Assembly (NCBI RefSeq): GCF_963853765.1
Contig: NC_088854.1
Span: 43,586,001-43,650,000, forward strand
Direction: 5' to 3'
DNA: 64,000 nt
DNA from: Magallana gigas
Taxonomy: Eukaryota
Shown: positions 26,131 to 33,768 of the stretch, piece after piece
How positions within the stretch are numbered: the first letter of the stretch is position 1
How the letters are laid out: the number at the start of each line of letters is the position of its first letter
The notes under the pieces: model-generated
Database searches by the model: none
The model's input: only the letters and a program-made list of their open reading frames with translations
Told to the model about the DNA's origin: nothing
Made by a program: the position numbers and the translations under genes

Positions 26131-29100
26131 ATGTCGGCTATTCAGCGAAGGAAAAGACGGCCAAATGGAGGCCATAGGAAAGATACGCCAGATGTAAAAA
26201 TCATGAAATCCATGGACTCGTTTGCTCGATCGATCTCGTCTATAGATTACCAGTTGACTCAAAAATGCAGTATATGTGCTCGTCCAAACTCCCAGCTGGG
26301 TAGTTTAAGACCAGTGATGAAAGTATTAGAGATCTCTTGCCATGGAATCCCTTGGCTATTAGGAACTATCGGATTACTTTTATCTGTTCATAAACCAGAA
26401 CATTTAGTAGTCCTGATGAACTTATTGATAGGTAAGATTTAAAATACTGAATGCATGCATGCTAGTAGTTATTTCCCAAGTTTTTCTTATATTACTCTCT
26501 CTCTCTCTCTCCCTCCCTCTCTCTCTCTCATAAAAATACATTGCATGTAGGCATGCCAAGCCAATTTTAAAATGGTATTATGAGATTAAAATCTTTGTAT
26601 ATTTCAATTCTGTTACCTGCTATTAAGCTTAAAAATTCATTGTTTTTGAAAAATTCCAACATTATATATTTTTAAAATATTTTTGAAGTTTGCACTTTTA
26701 ACATATACAATTGAATTTTTACATATAAAATGTCACCTCCATTTTCATACCTTTAAACCACTGAAATTTTTTTTTTGTTAACACAAAACTCAAGAGAATT
26801 GATAAAAGAACAATGTCCAGTGTGAAATTTTCATTAAACATACAATTTTATTAATTATAATTAACAATGAAATGAAAATTGTTAGTTTATTTTGGTCGAT
26901 CAGCTAGATCTCTGGCCCCCATGCAATGTCTGTAAATAGAATTAAAAAAATATTAATTTATGTGATATTTGCATATCAATAAAATGAATAAATAAACAAG
27001 ATATCTCAGTAATACTATTTACTAATACATAATTACCTGTTTAGAAATGAATCAGAACAGTATACAGAAGTCTTAACTCGGGAACCATGAAATCTCTGCT
27101 AACATGTCTGAAACCAAGCAAAAGTAAATTTTGTAAGATATTTTAAATTTTTAACAAATTGTATGATTAATGGACTGATGAAATGTATTGCTTTAATAAA
27201 TTGAAATGTTTAAGTTTTATTTTCAGTGATGAAGAGTAAATGCAATTCTCATAATTATCATACAGTGTATTATTAATACTAGCACCAATATAGAAATGTG
27301 AAGTCTGAATTGAAAAAAAAAAACAACCCACAACTATAAGAACAAAACAAAGAAGACAAGCCTGCAACTTCTATCAGTTTTCAATAGTACATATGATAAA
27401 TAATTAAAAACAAAATGTTTTTTAGTAAAAAAGAAATAAAATTTTAGTATTCCATGAAGTAGGAAATTCACAACTGTAAAGGTCTTTTCCAAAACTTTCA
27501 ACAACAGAAAAACAACCGAAATGCCATACATTCAACTGATACCTCTGGTATAATCTCTAAATCACCCTTTTTATAATCATCCAAAAGTTTGTAAGTGTAC
27601 ACACACTTTGTAATTCCATCTTCTGCCACATCATTATCATACACAATGTTATAGAAGTTCACAAAACCTGGCACAACACTTATAACCCTTCCTATGTAAT
27701 TGTCTGTTGAAAATCTATGTTTAACCCTTTTCCCAACCAATAATGGAGTCCTAATTCTTTGTGGTTCAGTATCTGGGCCATGATAAGCAGCATCTATAAG
27801 CTTCAGCAAGTTTTCTCTCAATACAGAAATAGGATGCTTTTTACCTTTAGAGCTAAACTTAAAAACCTCTTTGTTTTCATGTTTTTGCTTCAACATCTTT
27901 TGTCTAAATCGAAGTTGAGCCTCAAGTGCTTTCCTTTTCTCATTCTCCTTCTCAATCTCACCAAGTGCTGCATCAACTCTTTCCCTCGACTGCCAAAGCC
28001 CATAATATGCTATTTCATTTGTTTGTTTTTCCCGCTGTGCAAGTAAATTTTGCTCCTTTTTAGCAAGAGCAACCTTTTTTTCTTCTAAAAGCTGTCTTCG
28101 CTTTAAAACAATATCATGGCACCGCTCTTTAAATTGTGCTCTAAGCTCCCTTCCTTCCGAAATACCCTTACTTATCATCTCGTGTTTTTCTTGATCTGGT
28201 AAAGAATCTAACCATTTGGATGTTTTGTTAAATGAAAACATGATGAATGCCTCATTTGTTATGGTTGATGCGTTTGGGCGAAAACTTATAAAGTTGTCTA
28301 ACATTCCAAACACTCTCTCACTCATTTTATTGTGTGGAACAACAGATTTGCTTTGATCTTTGAGTTTATCAGAAGGGTTATTGTATGCTCCTCCAGGTAA
28401 ATGTTCTCTTAAGGCGCCAGAAACAAGTTTATGGAAGCCACAAAACAGCAATTGGGCAAGCTGAATAGCAATATGATCAAATTCATCATTTGGTTTCACT
28501 AGTTCTTCATAAAGTTTGTCTTTAACAATTAAACTCTCTTCAAATGGGTACTCATCTCCATTAACAAATCCTGATGCATCTGTGCTCTGTCTTTCAAGGT
28601 ATACAGTAAGGCTTTCAAAATATGTGTTAAGATCTAAAATATTGAGGTTCTTTTCAATAATTCTCCAAAACGGTGCAGTTATCAATTTTGATATTAATCC
28701 CAACACCTTGCAGGCAGCAAGGAAAACTGGATTCTTAATTAAATGAGCAATTATCTTGTGCAGATTGTTTGTAACTCCATGAACATTGTTTAGAAATGTA
28801 CTGATTGTCTCTCTGTGGTAGTAAACTACCTCAGCAATAAAAAAGATTACATTGAACCTGTTTCCCCGGAATGGAATAAATAATACTTTTTTATCCCTTG
28901 AACTGCAATAAACTTTGAATTCTGCAAATGCACCACATTTCTCATCGCCTCCACAAGAGAAACATTTTGAGCAACATCTCATTAAAGTTAATGTTTTAGC
29001 CTCGCTTTTTGAAAAATAACATTCACTTTCCTGGTCAGTTTCAGGATCTTCAACAACATTAGATTCAGAATTTCCTTGTTCATCTTCAAACTTTTTGAGA

Positions 29101-32100
29101 ATAGGTGATGTGCACTCTGCCATATTTACAAGTAGATGAAGTGCACAAAAGAAGTTATTAACTTTGCTGCACATGAGTTTTTGTTCATTACTGAGTACTT
29201 CCCAGTCCTTTTTAACAATAGACAAAATTTCCGATTTATACTGCTGCAAAAGTTCTGTGAATGATATGTTTACTTTAGCCCTATCAGACATGAAACTTTG
29301 GATGTTGCTTATGATTGTATGACCAACTGATACATCTTCATTGATTATCATTTCCTCACAAGCAGATGATATGTCGTTGAGAATTTCTTTGAAAGTGTCC
29401 AGTGTTGTTGAGGCTGCTTTATTATGCATGTCTCTTAGTCCCAGGCAAAAGACCTCTTTTTCTTCATTGCTTGCAAGGAATGTTTGGTAAGTCTTGCCTT
29501 TCTTTCTCGTTTCATCTCCATACAAACAAAGGTTTTTCTGTTGTCCCAGTTTCACACCAATGTGTTTTTGTCCGATTGCTACCTTTTCACACACAATGTT
29601 GTCTACTGTTTGTCTTGATGGCAATTCATTAGCTACTTTGTTTCCTAACTTTAAAACGCTTTCAATAACTGATGGGATGTTTTTAGTGGCAACATTAAGA
29701 GAGGTCAATTTCATTATACATTCTCTAACCTTGGGGGTGTATGATCCAGAATCTTCATCAAATATTTTCATTTCAACATCATCATCCAATAAATTCAACA
29801 AATAATCTCTTTCCTGTTCCAGTGCTTTTATATCACTTTTCAACTTCAATAATTCTTTTGCAGAGTCATCATTACCCTCTGGTTTTGTCTCGTGAGGAAC
29901 AGATTGTAGTTTTGTAAGCTCAGTCTGCATAGTTTTATATTCAGACAACAATTCCTTACATCTTTCTTTTTCTTTTGTAAGCAAATATGAGCAATCTCTC
30001 TCCAGTTTTTGATACTTTTTAGCCGTTTTTATTTTTAATTCATCTCGTTTTCTTTTTCTCATTAGTAGTAAATTCTCATACCTAAGTTTTCTTGTTTTTG
30101 CTTTCCATTCATCAACCTCTTTTTTTCTTTTTTTTTCTTTTTCTGTTATTTCTTTTAATTTATTTTGCTGTAAATGTTTTGACGCCTCTATTTCTTCTTC
30201 ACAGAGAAGTTCTCTATGCTTAATTTTTTCATTTTGTTCTTTTAATGTGTTGCTCAAAGACATCAATGTTAAATTAACTGCTTCAGACTCGAATTGTGCC
30301 ATAATTGGCTTTTTAACACCTCGTGTTACTGTCCCTACAGGAATTTCAAAATTTAAAGCTTCAAAATCGGTTCTGTATTTCCCCTTTTTTTTCTTTAAGT
30401 TTTCATTTGTGCGTCTTAATTTCCTTACTAAAGCATCTGCATTAATAATTTCATTTTCTCCTATATAGTCTTTAAAAATTTGGTCAATTTTACATAGAGG
30501 AACATTGTCATTTTTCATTTTTTCAAACATGTTTACGGCATCTTTATTGGTTATGAGTGGAATTTTTTTTGGGGGGGGGGGGGGGGGTTATTTAACAGAT
30601 ATCATTACAGTCATCCAGAATTGTCATTTTTCCTCCTCGATTTTCAATTAAAGCCCTATTTATTTCAAAAATGCTGCTTGGGATATCTAATAGTCCAATG
30701 AGTTTCTTTTCACGTTTGAAAAAAATTTCGTCCGTGATATCTTCTATCAAAGTTTCAATGAACTCTGTTTCCTGATACAGGTAGTCTTCTACCTTTATTT
30801 CAAAAATATCTCTAGCTTTTAGATAGTTGTTATCATCATAAATCTCTTTAACAAATTTGTCAAAAATGCTCAGTAATTTTCTGGCATTATCTGAACATGT
30901 TTTGCTGGCTAAACGGCCATCCAAAATTTTCCTGACAAAGGAAAGTTTAGGAACACAAAACCCCGCTCTTTGCCTTTCAAGTACCTCACAAAGATGAGAA
31001 CTCTTTGACATACTCTTGATCTGTTGAAAGTAGTAAATGAATGCCATTACAATATGTAAATCGCCTACCATAATCAATTCAATATACATTTCGAATTTCC
31101 TCTGTTGACATATCGAAATTAACGTTAAAATCTTATTATCTGATCGAAGATAATCCGTAATAAGAACAATTTCAATAATATGGTTTCAAAATAACTTTAA
31201 ATACAAGCATAAACTACGCTATATATCTTTGAAAATGAAATAAAAGGTGAAAATCAGTGTGAAATATGGGAGCCGCCATTTTTGAACGGAAACGAGGCTA
31301 TCAACACACCACATATTATTTCGACAAAATATACATATTGTCGTGCATTCTTTCATCATTTCTTATAATAATTAACAACATAAAGTATGATATATTTTAC
31401 CTATCATAGTTAAAAGGTTGCCTTTGCATTTAAAAAGACAAAACACACTTACCGCTCTCTTTCAGCTTATTTTTCTTTGATAAAAACACGTGTTTCTCCA
31501 GAAGTAGAGAGAAAGGCATGCGCTTGGATCATTTCGTAAACTGGTTCCTTTAACATTCGGAATATATCGTACGTTTTCTTCGAGTTGTAAGCCGTAAAAG
31601 ACAACAACCCTCATGCCTAAAATACGCATGACGTCAGAGACATATAAAAAATAGAGAAGATCGAGTTACGGCCCTTTGCTTTGGCATGCCTATTGCATGT
31701 AAAGTATTTTTTATGTTCAGAAAGCTCAGAATGACATGTTTATACTTAGCTGCAGAACTGTAGCTCTCCGTGGGAAAAAAATATTGACAGACCGGAGAGC
31801 TACAGGGCCACCCATTGAAAAAATTGTATATTTATTGCGCAGAAAAACGTGCGCTAGTTTTCGACCAATTTACCTTATTTATACACAAATTCTGAAAACA
31901 ATTAGTACCACATTTTCGCTAGCCAAGGGTTTTCGGTCCACTTTGCTCCCCATAAACCCTTGGCGGATTTCATTGCGAAAACTTGGTGACGAGCTCCGTT
32001 TTATGATTGGCTGCAGCTGCGAGTAGCTGATCCAATCGCAGTGCTTGTAAATATAAACTTTAAAAGAAAACACATGTGTGATCTTTGGTAAATCATTCGG

Positions 32101-33768
32101 TGATTGAGACACAAGTTCTCGAGTATAGTGCCTCACCAACGATGGTCTAACCAGATCGCTTAAAAAACCTATATATTTTACTTGGATTGAACATAGTTCT
32201 ACAAACTTGTCAAGGCTCGCGTGATAGCATGGGAAGTAAACATGGCGAATGTAGAAGCTGCCCATCCCGTTAGTATATACGTTCCTGCTTATGGTTATTG
32301 CTTTTTAAAGTTTAATGAGATTTCTTTTATTTAATTTCTTTGGTTCACAATATTTACGACAACGATACCTGGTTTTATGACATGAAAGCTTTGATATAAA
32401 TCGCGACTTTTTCACTCCTGGTACAGGTCCTTACAAAACACTATGAATAAAACATTCCATGCTTTCCCTAGTTTTTAACTTAATTTGTATTTAATAGCAT
32501 TGTTAATTATGTTCCGATATTCGGTAGTCAACATGTTTTCAAGTTGTAATAATGCCGTAGTGTGTATATAACCCAATGTTTATATCGATTAAAATGTAAA
32601 TATGCAAGGGGTGCAACTCAAGTTGCTCGCTAGATAGCGCCACCACATCACTGAGTTTTCGCAATGAAATCCGCCAAGGGTTTTTGGGGAGCAAAGTGGA
32701 CCGAAAACCCTTGGCTAGCGAAGATGTTAGTACCATTAAATTCTTCATGCAATTTACTACTGATATCGTCTCTTCACTTGCCTCTGATAGTCTTTTAAAC
32801 ACCATCACCAGTCCTGTAAATTCATGTGGTGCACATTGTTTACATGTAAAAGTGGCGACTGTCGATCTCAATGTAAATTCAACATACTTGATTTTCCGAG
32901 GTCGGTACCGTGTTTCGGAGAAAGTCTAAGGCAAATAAAGAGGCGATATCAGTAGTACATTGCATGAAGAATTAAATGGTACTAATAGTTTTCACAGAAT
33001 TTGCGTATAAATAAGGTAAATTAGTTGAAAACTAGCGCACATTTTTCTGTAGCTCTCAGGTCTGTCAATATTTTTTTTCCCCGGAGAGCTACAGTTCTGC
33101 AGCTAGTTTATACTATACTGTCCCAAGCCCAAGGTAGCCTTCATTTACCTAGTTCACATTTTGCTTAATTACTTGATATTTATGAATATCTCCGGGTTCA
33201 AACGATGTTCATTCAAAAATATAAAAAAAAAACATATGAAACATATCAGGTTTCAATTTTTTTAACATTAAAGTTTCCCAGACTTATAGTAACCCATTAT
33301 AATTTCAATTTGCATGGGTGTTGTAAATATTATGACTTGGAAATATATTCAAGAAATCTTATCATGTATTTTCATTTTGTATTAGGCCTGATTGGAGATC
33401 TCATCATCATTGCTGTTCTCAAGATGCTAGTTCAGCGCGAAAGACCACCGCTCAACAAATCAGACATGTTTGCCACAGTGTCTGTCGACAACTACTCTTT
33501 CCCCTCAGGCCACTGTTCCAGGGCCATTATGCTTGCTTACTTCTTTTCAGAAAGGGTGAATTTTGAGGCACCAATACTTGGGCTTATTGTTTTGTGGGCA
33601 CTTTTGGTTTCATTATCTAGACTTCTTCTCGGAAGACATTATTTAAGTGATGTTTTGTTTGGAATGATTCTTGGAGCTTTAGAGTTCAAGCTTTTGTCAT
33701 ATTATTGGCTATCGAAAGAGAACTGTATGTTTGTTTTAGAACCATTTTTTGCACATTTTCACTTGTAG
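26131..33768 (+). CDS. PLPP6: Polyisoprenoid diphosphate/phospholipid phosphatase 6/7 family (PAP2 superfamily)
   Basis: Exons 26131-26431 and 33386-33768 join in phase: LEISCHGIPWL...LLIG|LIGDLII, C1 KMLVQRERP, C2 YSFPSGH, C3 SRLLLGRHYLSDV. Likely co-orthologue of PLPP6 and PLPP7. Confidence 0.9.
26495..26529. repeat. (CT)n microsatellite
   Basis: Imperfect CT run just inside the PLPP intron, next to the transposon end. Confidence 0.9.
27498..30530 (-). CDS. DDE transposase with N-terminal coiled coil and C-terminal Spin/Ssty(Tudor)-like domain
   Basis: Uninterrupted 1010-aa ORF. Motifs LYGDET (D ~29515), FMSDRAKVN (D ~29284), FFCALHLLVN (CxxH), RGNRF (equivalent to the hAT TRW) and HNKMSERVFG (E ~28318) follow the hAT/P/MULE-type layout. 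C-terminus LVGKRVKHRF...YTYKLLDDYKKGDLEII. Confidence 0.85.
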   Translation of the reverse strand: MFEKMKNDNVPLCKIDQIFKDYIGENEIINADALVRKLRRTNENLKKKKGKYRTDFEALNFEIPVGTVTRGVKKPIMAQFESEAVNLTLMSLSNTLKEQNEKIKHRELLCEEEIEASKHLQQNKLKEITEKEKKRKKEVDEWKAKTRKLRYENLLLMRKRKRDELKIKTAKKYQKLERDCSYLLTKEKERCKELLSEYKTMQTELTKLQSVPHETKPEGNDDSAKELLKLKSDIKALEQERDYLLNLLDDDVEMKIFDEDSGSYTPKVRECIMKLTSLNVATKNIPSVIESVLKLGNKVANELPSRQTVDNIVCEKVAIGQKHIGVKLGQQKNLCLYGDETRKKGKTYQTFLASNEEKEVFCLGLRDMHNKAASTTLDTFKEILNDISSACEEMIINEDVSVGHTIISNIQSFMSDRAKVNISFTELLQQYKSEILSIVKKDWEVLSNEQKLMCSKVNNFFCALHLLVNMAECTSPILKKFEDEQGNSESNVVEDPETDQESECYFSKSEAKTLTLMRCCSKCFSCGGDEKCGAFAEFKVYCSSRDKKVLFIPFRGNRFNVIFFIAEVVYYHRETISTFLNNVHGVTNNLHKIIAHLIKNPVFLAACKVLGLISKLITAPFWRIIEKNLNILDLNTYFESLTVYLERQSTDASGFVNGDEYPFEESLIVKDKLYEELVKPNDEFDHIAIQLAQLLFCGFHKLVSGALREHLPGGAYNNPSDKLKDQSKSVVPHNKMSERVFGMLDNFISFRPNASTITNEAFIMFSFNKTSKWLDSLPDQEKHEMISKGISEGRELRAQFKERCHDIVLKRRQLLEEKKVALAKKEQNLLAQREKQTNEIAYYGLWQSRERVDAALGEIEKENEKRKALEAQLRFRQKMLKQKHENKEVFKFSSKGKKHPISVLRENLLKLIDAAYHGPDTEPQRIRTPLLVGKRVKHRFSTDNYIGRVISVVPGFVNFYNIVYDNDVAEDGITKCVYTYKLLDDYKKGDLEIIPEVSVECMAFRLFFCC
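30592..31089 (-). CDS. Upstream ORF within the transposon; possibly the first coding exon of the transposase
   Basis: 165-aa ORF inside the TIRs on the same strand. A 55-nt GT-AG segment (30596-30542) containing a poly-C run would fuse it in frame to the 1010-aa ORF. Confidence 0.45.
   Translation of the reverse strand: MYIELIMVGDLHIVMAFIYYFQQIKSMSKSSHLCEVLERQRAGFCVPKLSFVRKILDGRLASKTCSDNARKLLSIFDKFVKEIYDDNNYLKARDIFEIKVEDYLYQETEFIETLIEDITDEIFFKREKKLIGLLDIPSSIFEINRALIENRGGKMTILDDCNDIC
31747..33105. mobile_element. Non-autonomous fold-back DNA transposon with 9-bp TSD (Mutator-like)
   Basis: TIR TAGCTGCAGAACTGTAGCTCTCCG / CGGAGAGCTACAGTTCTGCAGCTA; identical GTTTATACT at 31738-31746 and 33106-33114. 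Long imperfect inverted arms; no transposase ORF. Confidence 0.88.

Follow-up and report, generated by a model that had tools for sequence, protein, structure and literature searches.

The integrases of chromoviruses, which are Ty3/gypsy retrotransposons such as MAGGY, carry chromodomains that direct insertion to H3K9-methylated chromatin. Other fusions between reader domains and transposons are known, mainly with chromo and PHD domains, and hAT elements with CBX/CDY chromodomains occur in the sponge Ephydatia (doi 10.1101/2021.11.30.470311). Among histone readers, the second Tudor-like repeat of SPIN1 has a methyl-lysine pocket that consists of H139, F141, W151, Y170, Y177, Y179, and D184 (PMC8213585). 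Here we describe a stretch of 64,000 nucleotides from the oyster Magallana gigas (RefSeq assembly GCF_963853765.1, contig NC_088854.1, positions 43,586,001 to 43,650,000 of the forward strand), which we call the window and whose own numbering is used for coordinates below. It contains an autonomous DNA transposon of the cut-and-paste type that is intact and has moved recently, and whose transposase ends in a Spindlin-type (Spin/Ssty) domain. We consider it probable that this hAT-type element thus carries a domain that acts as a methyl-lysine reader. An initial annotation, made from the sequence letters alone, had further proposed that the domain steers integration to H3K4me3 chromatin. Its overall interpretation is partly supported by the analyses presented here.

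The single Spin/Ssty Tudor-like domain lies at 27540-27743 on the minus strand and corresponds to amino acids 930-997 of the transposase. The initial annotation had quoted 64 residues from this region and placed a Spindlin-type Tudor domain at the transposase C terminus. Translation of 27549-27740 on the minus strand returns exactly these residues, inside an open reading frame (ORF) of 1010 amino acids at 27498-30530, and the domain assignment stands. When the last 100 amino acids were compared with all PDB sequences by phmmer, the only significant matches were Spindlins (SPIN1 at E 8e-10; SPIN2B, SPIN3, and SPIN4 at E 3e-8 to 3e-7), and the best-scoring stretch was always Tudor repeat 2 (SPIN1 residues 131-196). 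Even the whole transposase matches SPIN1 repeat 2 (E 5e-05). Identity to repeat 2 of several Spindlins reaches 43-50%, and the LLDDYKxGDL tail is common to both.

We also approached the relationship from the opposite side by searching 1.84 billion proteins with a profile made only from five transposon-borne domains. This profile recovered 293 proteins at E values up to 0.001, and three-repeat Spindlins were found at E 3e-12 and weaker. All the long matches (626-1082 amino acids) carry the domain at the C terminus of the same transposase body, and they score 29-48 bits on Spin-Ssty. A word-indexed homologue search confined to the domain region returned just two close relatives.

The predicted structure is in accord with these matches. 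An AlphaFold model of amino acids 916-1003, a comparison that the initial annotation had put forward, has the Spindlin fold, in which a short helix at LLDDY comes after the strands, and its predicted local distance difference test (pLDDT) score is 89.9. The best 47 Foldseek matches of this model in the PDB are all Spindlin-1 to Spindlin-4. The best local superpositions on Spindlins have a root-mean-square deviation (rmsd) of approximately 1.6 Å over about 71 columns, with 36-37% identity. Spindlins (SPIN1-4 and Ssty) differ in architecture, as they are stand-alone proteins of approximately 260 amino acids with three tandem repeats, whereas the oyster protein has one repeat that ends a transposase of 1010 amino acids.

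The pocket of SPIN1 repeat 2 can be followed residue by residue into the transposase. The HMMER alignment pairs F940 with F141, Y945 with W151, Y964 with Y170, and Y978 with Y177, which are the same four cage pairs that had been assigned by eye, and it also pairs H938 with H139, Y980 with Y179, and D985 with D184. Six of the seven pocket residues are identical. In an alignment of 50 sequences, H938 is invariant, and F940, Y964, Y978, and D985 are each at least 90% conserved. The domain is 92, 70, and 51% identical to those of three homologues, compared to 88, 64, and 50% for the catalytic core, and the pocket is near-invariant across families that are 41-60% identical. Because the identity of the domain is at least equal to that of the core, we argue that the pocket is under selection. 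On these sequence grounds, the domain is a putative methyl-lysine reader, and we lean toward this assignment with some reserve.

These data also bear on the idea that the domain has no function and is either a neutral passenger or similar to Spindlins by chance. Such an idea would be in keeping with a window copy that falls under the Pfam cut-off and with lineages in which the domain has been lost or degraded (see below). Chance resemblance is excluded by E values of 1e-9 to 1e-12 together with the fold match, and a passenger is not expected to be conserved like the catalytic core with a near-invariant pocket. This explanation is therefore already contradicted, and we give it almost no credence.

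Several observations weigh against a reader domain that works as SPIN1 repeat 2 does. First, the domain of the window copy aligns to all 50 positions of the Pfam Spin-Ssty family (PF02513) with only 17.9 bits (E 0.003), which misses the cut-off of 25 bits. Thus, the Pfam match foreseen by the initial annotation was obtained at full length but below the threshold, which homologous transposases do exceed (26.5 to 47.9 bits). Second, the remaining pocket residue, W151, is replaced by Y945, a position that is aromatic in most of the sequences shown in the 50-sequence alignment and is often W. Third, there is a 7-residue insertion relative to SPIN1 between cage tyrosines Y964 and Y978. A 5-residue deletion also precedes Y945, and residues that contact the peptide outside the cage differ (e.g., SPIN1 E142 corresponds to S941). 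Fourth, the cage geometry is predicted from the residues and the fold rather than from inspected coordinates. Fifth, a Spindlin repeat normally sits within an assembly of three repeats, and a lone repeat may behave differently. Finally, the pocket has diverged in one lineage of the family. Among the more distant lineages, one has a domain that is recognizable but altered (E 1e-5 to 1e-6), and another has a tail that resembles the domain by eye only.

The fusion extends well past the oyster. Named homologues were found in Mytilus, Dreissena, Ruditapes, Mercenaria, Sinanodonta, Ostrea, Saccostrea, Tegillarca, and Mya, and a homologue from the sea urchin Diadema setosum scores 43 bits on Spin-Ssty. 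Homologues with 84, 59, and 45% identity to the transposase are collinear with it over the full length and keep the Spin/Ssty domain, which in one of the three exceeds the Pfam cut-off. Judging from these protein sequences, the family has conserved the fusion in bivalves and a sea urchin. The homologues are annotated as “uncharacterized” except for one “SPIN3-like protein, partial” (Mya arenaria) and some that are called “E1A/CREB-binding protein” (JGI). For Mytilus coruscus, the gene model of one relative is chimeric and joins pieces of the transposase, a Spin domain, and a beta-propeller.

A domain-less sister lineage, whose transposase is 36% identical, adds to the points on the other side. 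It has at least four copies that are 97.5-99% identical (L007-L010, at G000:C3:39.95 Mb, C1:57.43 Mb, C1:6.01 Mb, and C3:23.49 Mb). Because this lineage has recent copies without the domain, the Spin/Ssty domain is accessory and dispensable for transposition. The same lineage is a natural control for the role of the domain.

Dispensability in a lineage with recent copies would suit a domain that binds a methylated non-histone partner or that serves the regulation or assembly of the transposase, for example by recruiting host factors or by escaping silencing, and that plays no part in target choice. The domain also follows a coiled coil, which could make it a regulatory module, and a target bias has so far only been proposed. 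Conversely, every ligand known for this class of folds is a histone tail (PMC8838590, PMC8213585), and the most conserved part of the domain is the exact pocket that binds histones. We consider such a non-targeting role improbable, though it deserves attention. A putative histone reader that may influence target choice continues to be our preferred reading.

The identification of the element itself rests on its boundaries and copies. The whole transposon spans 26548-31691 on the minus strand (5,144 bp), with its 5′ end at 31691 and its 3′ end at 26548, and this extent is the stretch that it has in common with a second copy (copy 2). Copy 2 (G000:C2:58557560-58562702) is located 15 Mb away on the same chromosome and is 99.6% identical over 5,164 bp. 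The likeness between the two copies stops at inverted repeats that read TAGGCATGCCAA. In the window, the 5′ terminal inverted repeat occupies 31680-31691 (TAGGCATGCCAA on the minus strand) and the 3′ terminal inverted repeat occupies 26548-26559 (TAGGCATGCCAA on the plus strand). The two are perfect over 12 bp and match at 13 of 15 positions when the span is lengthened. The target-site duplication TTGCATG is present at 26541-26547 on the left and at 31692-31698 on the right. Copy 2 is flanked on both sides by ATTATAT, which is also a 7-bp duplication.

Likewise, a sister family with TAGCTATTCCA terminal repeats has five copies of 98-99.7% identity, and four of the five have 7-bp duplications (CTGATTG, TACTGTT, GTTAAAA, and CTACATG), whereas the two sides differ at one position in the fifth. 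The transposase protein has at least 49 matches in the genome, in states that vary between intact and heavily decayed. Elsewhere in the genome, the element itself is also represented by derivatives that are deleted or decayed. One derivative, L028 (G000:C4:14853287-14857936), is internally deleted and rearranged, with termini that are 88-92% identical and unrelated DNA between them. In addition, a contig from another oyster sample runs past the 5′ end of the element at 31692 into other flanking sequence, which points to a polymorphic insertion. The cut-and-paste nature of the transposase, as claimed in the initial annotation, is borne out by the inverted repeats, the target duplication, the near-identical copy, and a Hermes-like DDE fold that is described below. 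We regard the architecture and the mobility of the element, as set out here, as virtually certain.

The same evidence bears on the notion that the ORF is a domesticated host gene, encoding a Spindlin-like chromatin protein derived from an old transposase, rather than part of an active transposon. The ORF is intact, transcribed, and intron-free, and its relatives are annotated as ordinary genes, such as the SPIN3-like model of Mya arenaria, all of which a domesticated gene would share. This notion is already contradicted by the terminal inverted repeats, the 7-bp duplication, the 99.6% identical copies at unrelated places, the many decayed copies and deleted derivatives, and the probable polymorphic insertion. 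It is thus very unlikely.

Where the element has inserted is relevant to what the domain might read. In the window, the element is antisense within the only intron of a PAP2 (PLPP6/7-like) gene. Exon 1 of this gene is at 26131-26432 on the plus strand, and RNA reads exit at 26432 and resume at 33387, where exon 2 begins (33387-33768, plus strand; Pfam PAP2, 78 bits). The insertion lies 116 bp past the exon-1 donor and 417 bp past the ATG. The distance of approximately 420 bp from the PLPP6/7 start codon given by the initial annotation is therefore accurate, whereas its placement beside a bidirectional promoter gives way to a location inside the PAP2 intron. The 5′ region of a gene, such as this site, is typical for H3K4me3 in animals, and this locus is a single data point. 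Copy 2 is located approximately 460 bp from the integrase-core ORF of another transposon (L013 6177-7094; Pfam rva_4, 261 bits). One site is thus at a gene 5′ region and the other is beside the integrase gene of another transposon, and this mixture is a point against steering. Because there are only two sites and their contexts are opposite, no insertion trend can be drawn from them.

Three side observations concern the insertion sites. The window site is near-palindromic at 26528-26547 and 31692-31712, where AAAAATAC...GTATTTTT surrounds the 7-bp duplication. On the 5′ side of copy 2, a similar AAAATACATTGCAT stretch is found at an almost equal distance. This near-palindrome could reflect a preference for certain targets, or it could be due to chance. 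The 3′ end of the element directly adjoins a (GA)n/(CT)n microsatellite at 26485-26541, within the intron of the PAP2 gene.

If the domain is a reader, its action could be envisaged as follows. The conserved pocket would bind a methylated lysine on a histone tail. H3K4me3 would be the best guess for the mark because SPIN1 repeat 2 binds it, and H4K20me3 would be possible as well. Hermes transposase is oligomeric. If the oyster transposase is likewise oligomeric, which we consider likely, it would present several reader domains per complex and could tether the transposition complex to marked nucleosomes. Such tethering might bias target capture and hence the choice of insertion sites. We regard specific steering to H3K4me3 chromatin as a tentative proposal that is rather less likely to be right than wrong.

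A working methyl-lysine reader could also recognize another mark, such as H4K20me3 or H3K9me3, and send the element to a safe haven in silent chromatin rather than to promoters, in the manner of the chromodomains of chromoviruses. SPIN1 Tudor 2 indeed binds H4K20me3 as well as H3K4me3 through the same pocket (PMC8838590). The position of copy 2 near the integrase ORF of another transposon and the altered contact residue (SPIN1 E142 versus S941) also lend themselves to this explanation. It must be set against the match of six of the seven pocket residues, D184 included, to the repeat that binds H3K4me3, and against the position of the window copy in a first intron near a gene start. On balance, we judge a different mark to be unlikely, yet somewhat more plausible than the non-targeting role considered above.

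RNA data were used to examine how the element is expressed. The RNA runs contain 77-89% of the words of the element. In a stranded polyA library, first mates map to the plus strand across the transposase ORF and to the minus strand over the neighboring plus-strand gene. This pattern fits sense transcription of the transposase, including the Spin/Ssty domain. The polyadenylation signal of the element transcript is near 26890, and a small second intron (26930-27036, minus strand) is present in its 3′ region.

One isoform skips the ORF. Its intron (27108-31452, minus strand, GT..AG) removes the entire transposase ORF. Contigs from two RNA runs contain the joint from 31453 to 27107, as do four raw reads from a third run. 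This isoform looks non-coding because its first exon has only a 55-amino-acid ORF. The initial annotation had raised the concern that transcripts might splice the domain out. Such an isoform does exist, albeit one that loses the whole ORF, whereas unspliced stranded reads span the domain. Since this unspliced coverage includes both the domain and the stop codon, the skipping isoform does not contradict the fusion. Many joints that run backward and poly-G loose ends are seen in RNA reads at a poly-C/poly-A tract (30563-30593) just upstream of the transposase ATG, and these oddities are most likely artifacts of sequencing or of length variation.

A second ORF precedes the transposase inside the element (30592-31089, minus strand). 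It encodes 165 amino acids, or 139 from an inner ATG, and it was found nowhere but in copies of this element, including decayed ones. Some related families have upstream ORFs of 100-146 amino acids, in which no similarity to this ORF was detected.

The transposase ORF (27498-30530, minus strand) encodes its 1010 amino acids with no intron needed. Its catalytic core corresponds to amino acids 231-835 (28026-29840, minus strand) and consists of an RNase H-like DDE domain into which a helical domain is inserted. The first catalytic aspartate is D339 (29514-29516) in the motif GDETRK, which hhalign puts onto the first D of canonical hAT transposases, and the second is D416 (29283-29285) in MSDRA, which is likewise aligned with those of hATs. 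A C462-x-x-H465 motif (29136-29147) aligns with the hAT CxxH motif, and the catalytic glutamate is E738 (28317-28319) in SERVFG; all four features are on the minus strand. D339, D416, C462, H465, R558-F559-N560, and E738 are invariant in a core alignment of 19 sequences. The D-D spacing is 77 and the D-E spacing is 322, similar to the 68 and 324 of Hermes. The core is predicted to be flanked by coiled coils, one of which (amino acids 800-900) lies ahead of the Spin/Ssty domain.

Structure comparison places this core closest to Hermes. The model of amino acids 231-835 has a pLDDT of 87, and its 12 best Foldseek matches in the PDB are all the Hermes hAT transposase. VIA-align gives a Z score of 17.2 for Hermes (rmsd of 3.5 Å over 342 residues), and the next scores are 10.4 for ISCth4, a transposase of the IS256 type, and 8.7 for retroviral integrases. 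The AlphaFold database contains uncharacterized proteins with the same fold as the core (template-modeling scores of up to 0.89), which presumably belong to mussels, amphioxus, a sponge, flatworms, and basidiomycetes. A search of PDB sequences with a hidden Markov model (HMM) profile of the core gave no significant match to Hermes. The link to Hermes is visible only through structure comparison and through hhalign, which brings the D, D, and CxxH into register with those of eight canonical oyster hATs (E 1e-4, probability 58%).

Despite these likenesses, the protein departs from typical hAT transposases. In the window protein and seven relatives, Pfam provided no family for the transposase body and, at E values up to 1, no match to the hAT dimerization domain PF05699. 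PF05699 matches 123 other places in the genome, and none of these is at a locus of the transposase family. The only trace of the dimerization domain is a loose resemblance of SERVFG. Like Hermes and other hAT elements, the oyster element has a DDE core of the RNase H type in which a large helical domain is inserted after the second D and before the E, as well as the CxxH motif, short terminal repeats that begin with TAG, and comparable D-D and D-E spacings. In contrast, the oyster element duplicates 7 bp where hATs duplicate 8 bp, and its transposase has long coiled coils and a reader domain, with no BED zinc finger found. We conclude that the transposase belongs to a hAT-related family with a hAT fold and is not a canonical hAT, because the dimerization domain is undetected, sequence searches miss Hermes, and the duplication is 7 bp.

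Other superfamilies were considered as well. Dada elements (Kojima and Jurka 2013, PMC3706591), which came into question because of their 6-7 bp duplications, are also alike in that a C/DxxH motif follows their second D, and they occur in Crassostrea gigas. They lack terminal inverted repeats, encode CCCC and CCHC zinc fingers, have a D-E spacing of approximately 176, contain introns, and target small RNA genes (PMC3706591). The oyster transposase has no zinc finger motifs and no Pfam matches to zinc fingers, and the targets of the element are an intron and the flank of a transposon. Dada was thus rejected on account of the terminal inverted repeats, the absence of zinc fingers, the D-E spacing, and the targets. 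The structure matches to P element, Transib, and IS256-like folds are far weaker than that to Hermes, and these affiliations were rejected for that reason.

The relationship between these elements and the Spindlins can now be considered. All nine Spin-Ssty matches that exceed the cut-off in the oyster genome are inside or directly beside transposase matches. A three-repeat Spindlin gene was not detected in this genome, where a vertebrate Spindlin query finds only repeat-2-like matches on the same transposon loci. When 51 transposon domains were placed in an unrooted tree with 17 Spindlin repeats, four clean groups emerged, and the tree splits three ways, into repeats 1 and 3 together, repeat 2, and the transposon clade (supports of 96/84, 97/91, and 94/90). 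The phylogeny advocated in the initial annotation thereby separates the transposon domains from the Spindlin repeats, and because it is unrooted, either direction of transfer fits.

Since the three branches meet at one node, a root on the transposon branch is allowed. Vertebrate Spindlins might therefore descend from a transposon-borne domain that was domesticated and then tripled after capture, rather than the transposons having borrowed from Spindlins. This origin would fit a domain that is confined to transposons in the oyster, the lack of a detected three-repeat gene there, and the fusion in bivalves and a sea urchin. We consider it a speculative proposal with a low chance of being correct.

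If the domain does tether the transposase to methylated nucleosomes, the element would represent a DNA transposon of the cut-and-paste type that naturally contains its own reader of histone marks. Because it is small, intact, and apparently active, it makes the chromatin steering of DNA-transposon insertion directly testable. Moreover, a domain that is known mainly from vertebrate Spindlins is now found in invertebrate mobile elements, so that the origin of Spindlins becomes a testable question. On a practical level, the “SPIN3-like” and “E1A/CREB-binding protein” gene models of bivalves are transposase genes that belong to this family of Spin/Ssty fusions.

Chromatin readers on transposons have already been published, and the Spindlin-type variant was found in no paper. 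Spin/Ssty is unmentioned in the survey by Grau-Bove et al. (0 occurrences of “spin”; doi 10.1101/2021.11.30.470311), and a search of the literature for Spindlin or Spin/Ssty together with transposase or transposon yielded no relevant paper, which agrees with the impression in the initial annotation that the fusion had not been described. The oyster transposase resembles the chromovirus integrases in having a known or, in the oyster, putative methyl-lysine reader of the royal-family type at the C terminus of an integrating DDE enzyme. The chromoviruses combine a retrotransposon integrase with a chromodomain, and targeting has been shown for them, whereas the oyster element combines a DNA transposase with a Spin/Ssty domain, for which we infer targeting. 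The hAT-chromo elements of Ephydatia are similar in that a hAT-type DNA transposase carries a captured histone reader. Theirs is a fusion in a single species, whereas the oyster-type family is broad and is conserved in bivalves and a sea urchin.

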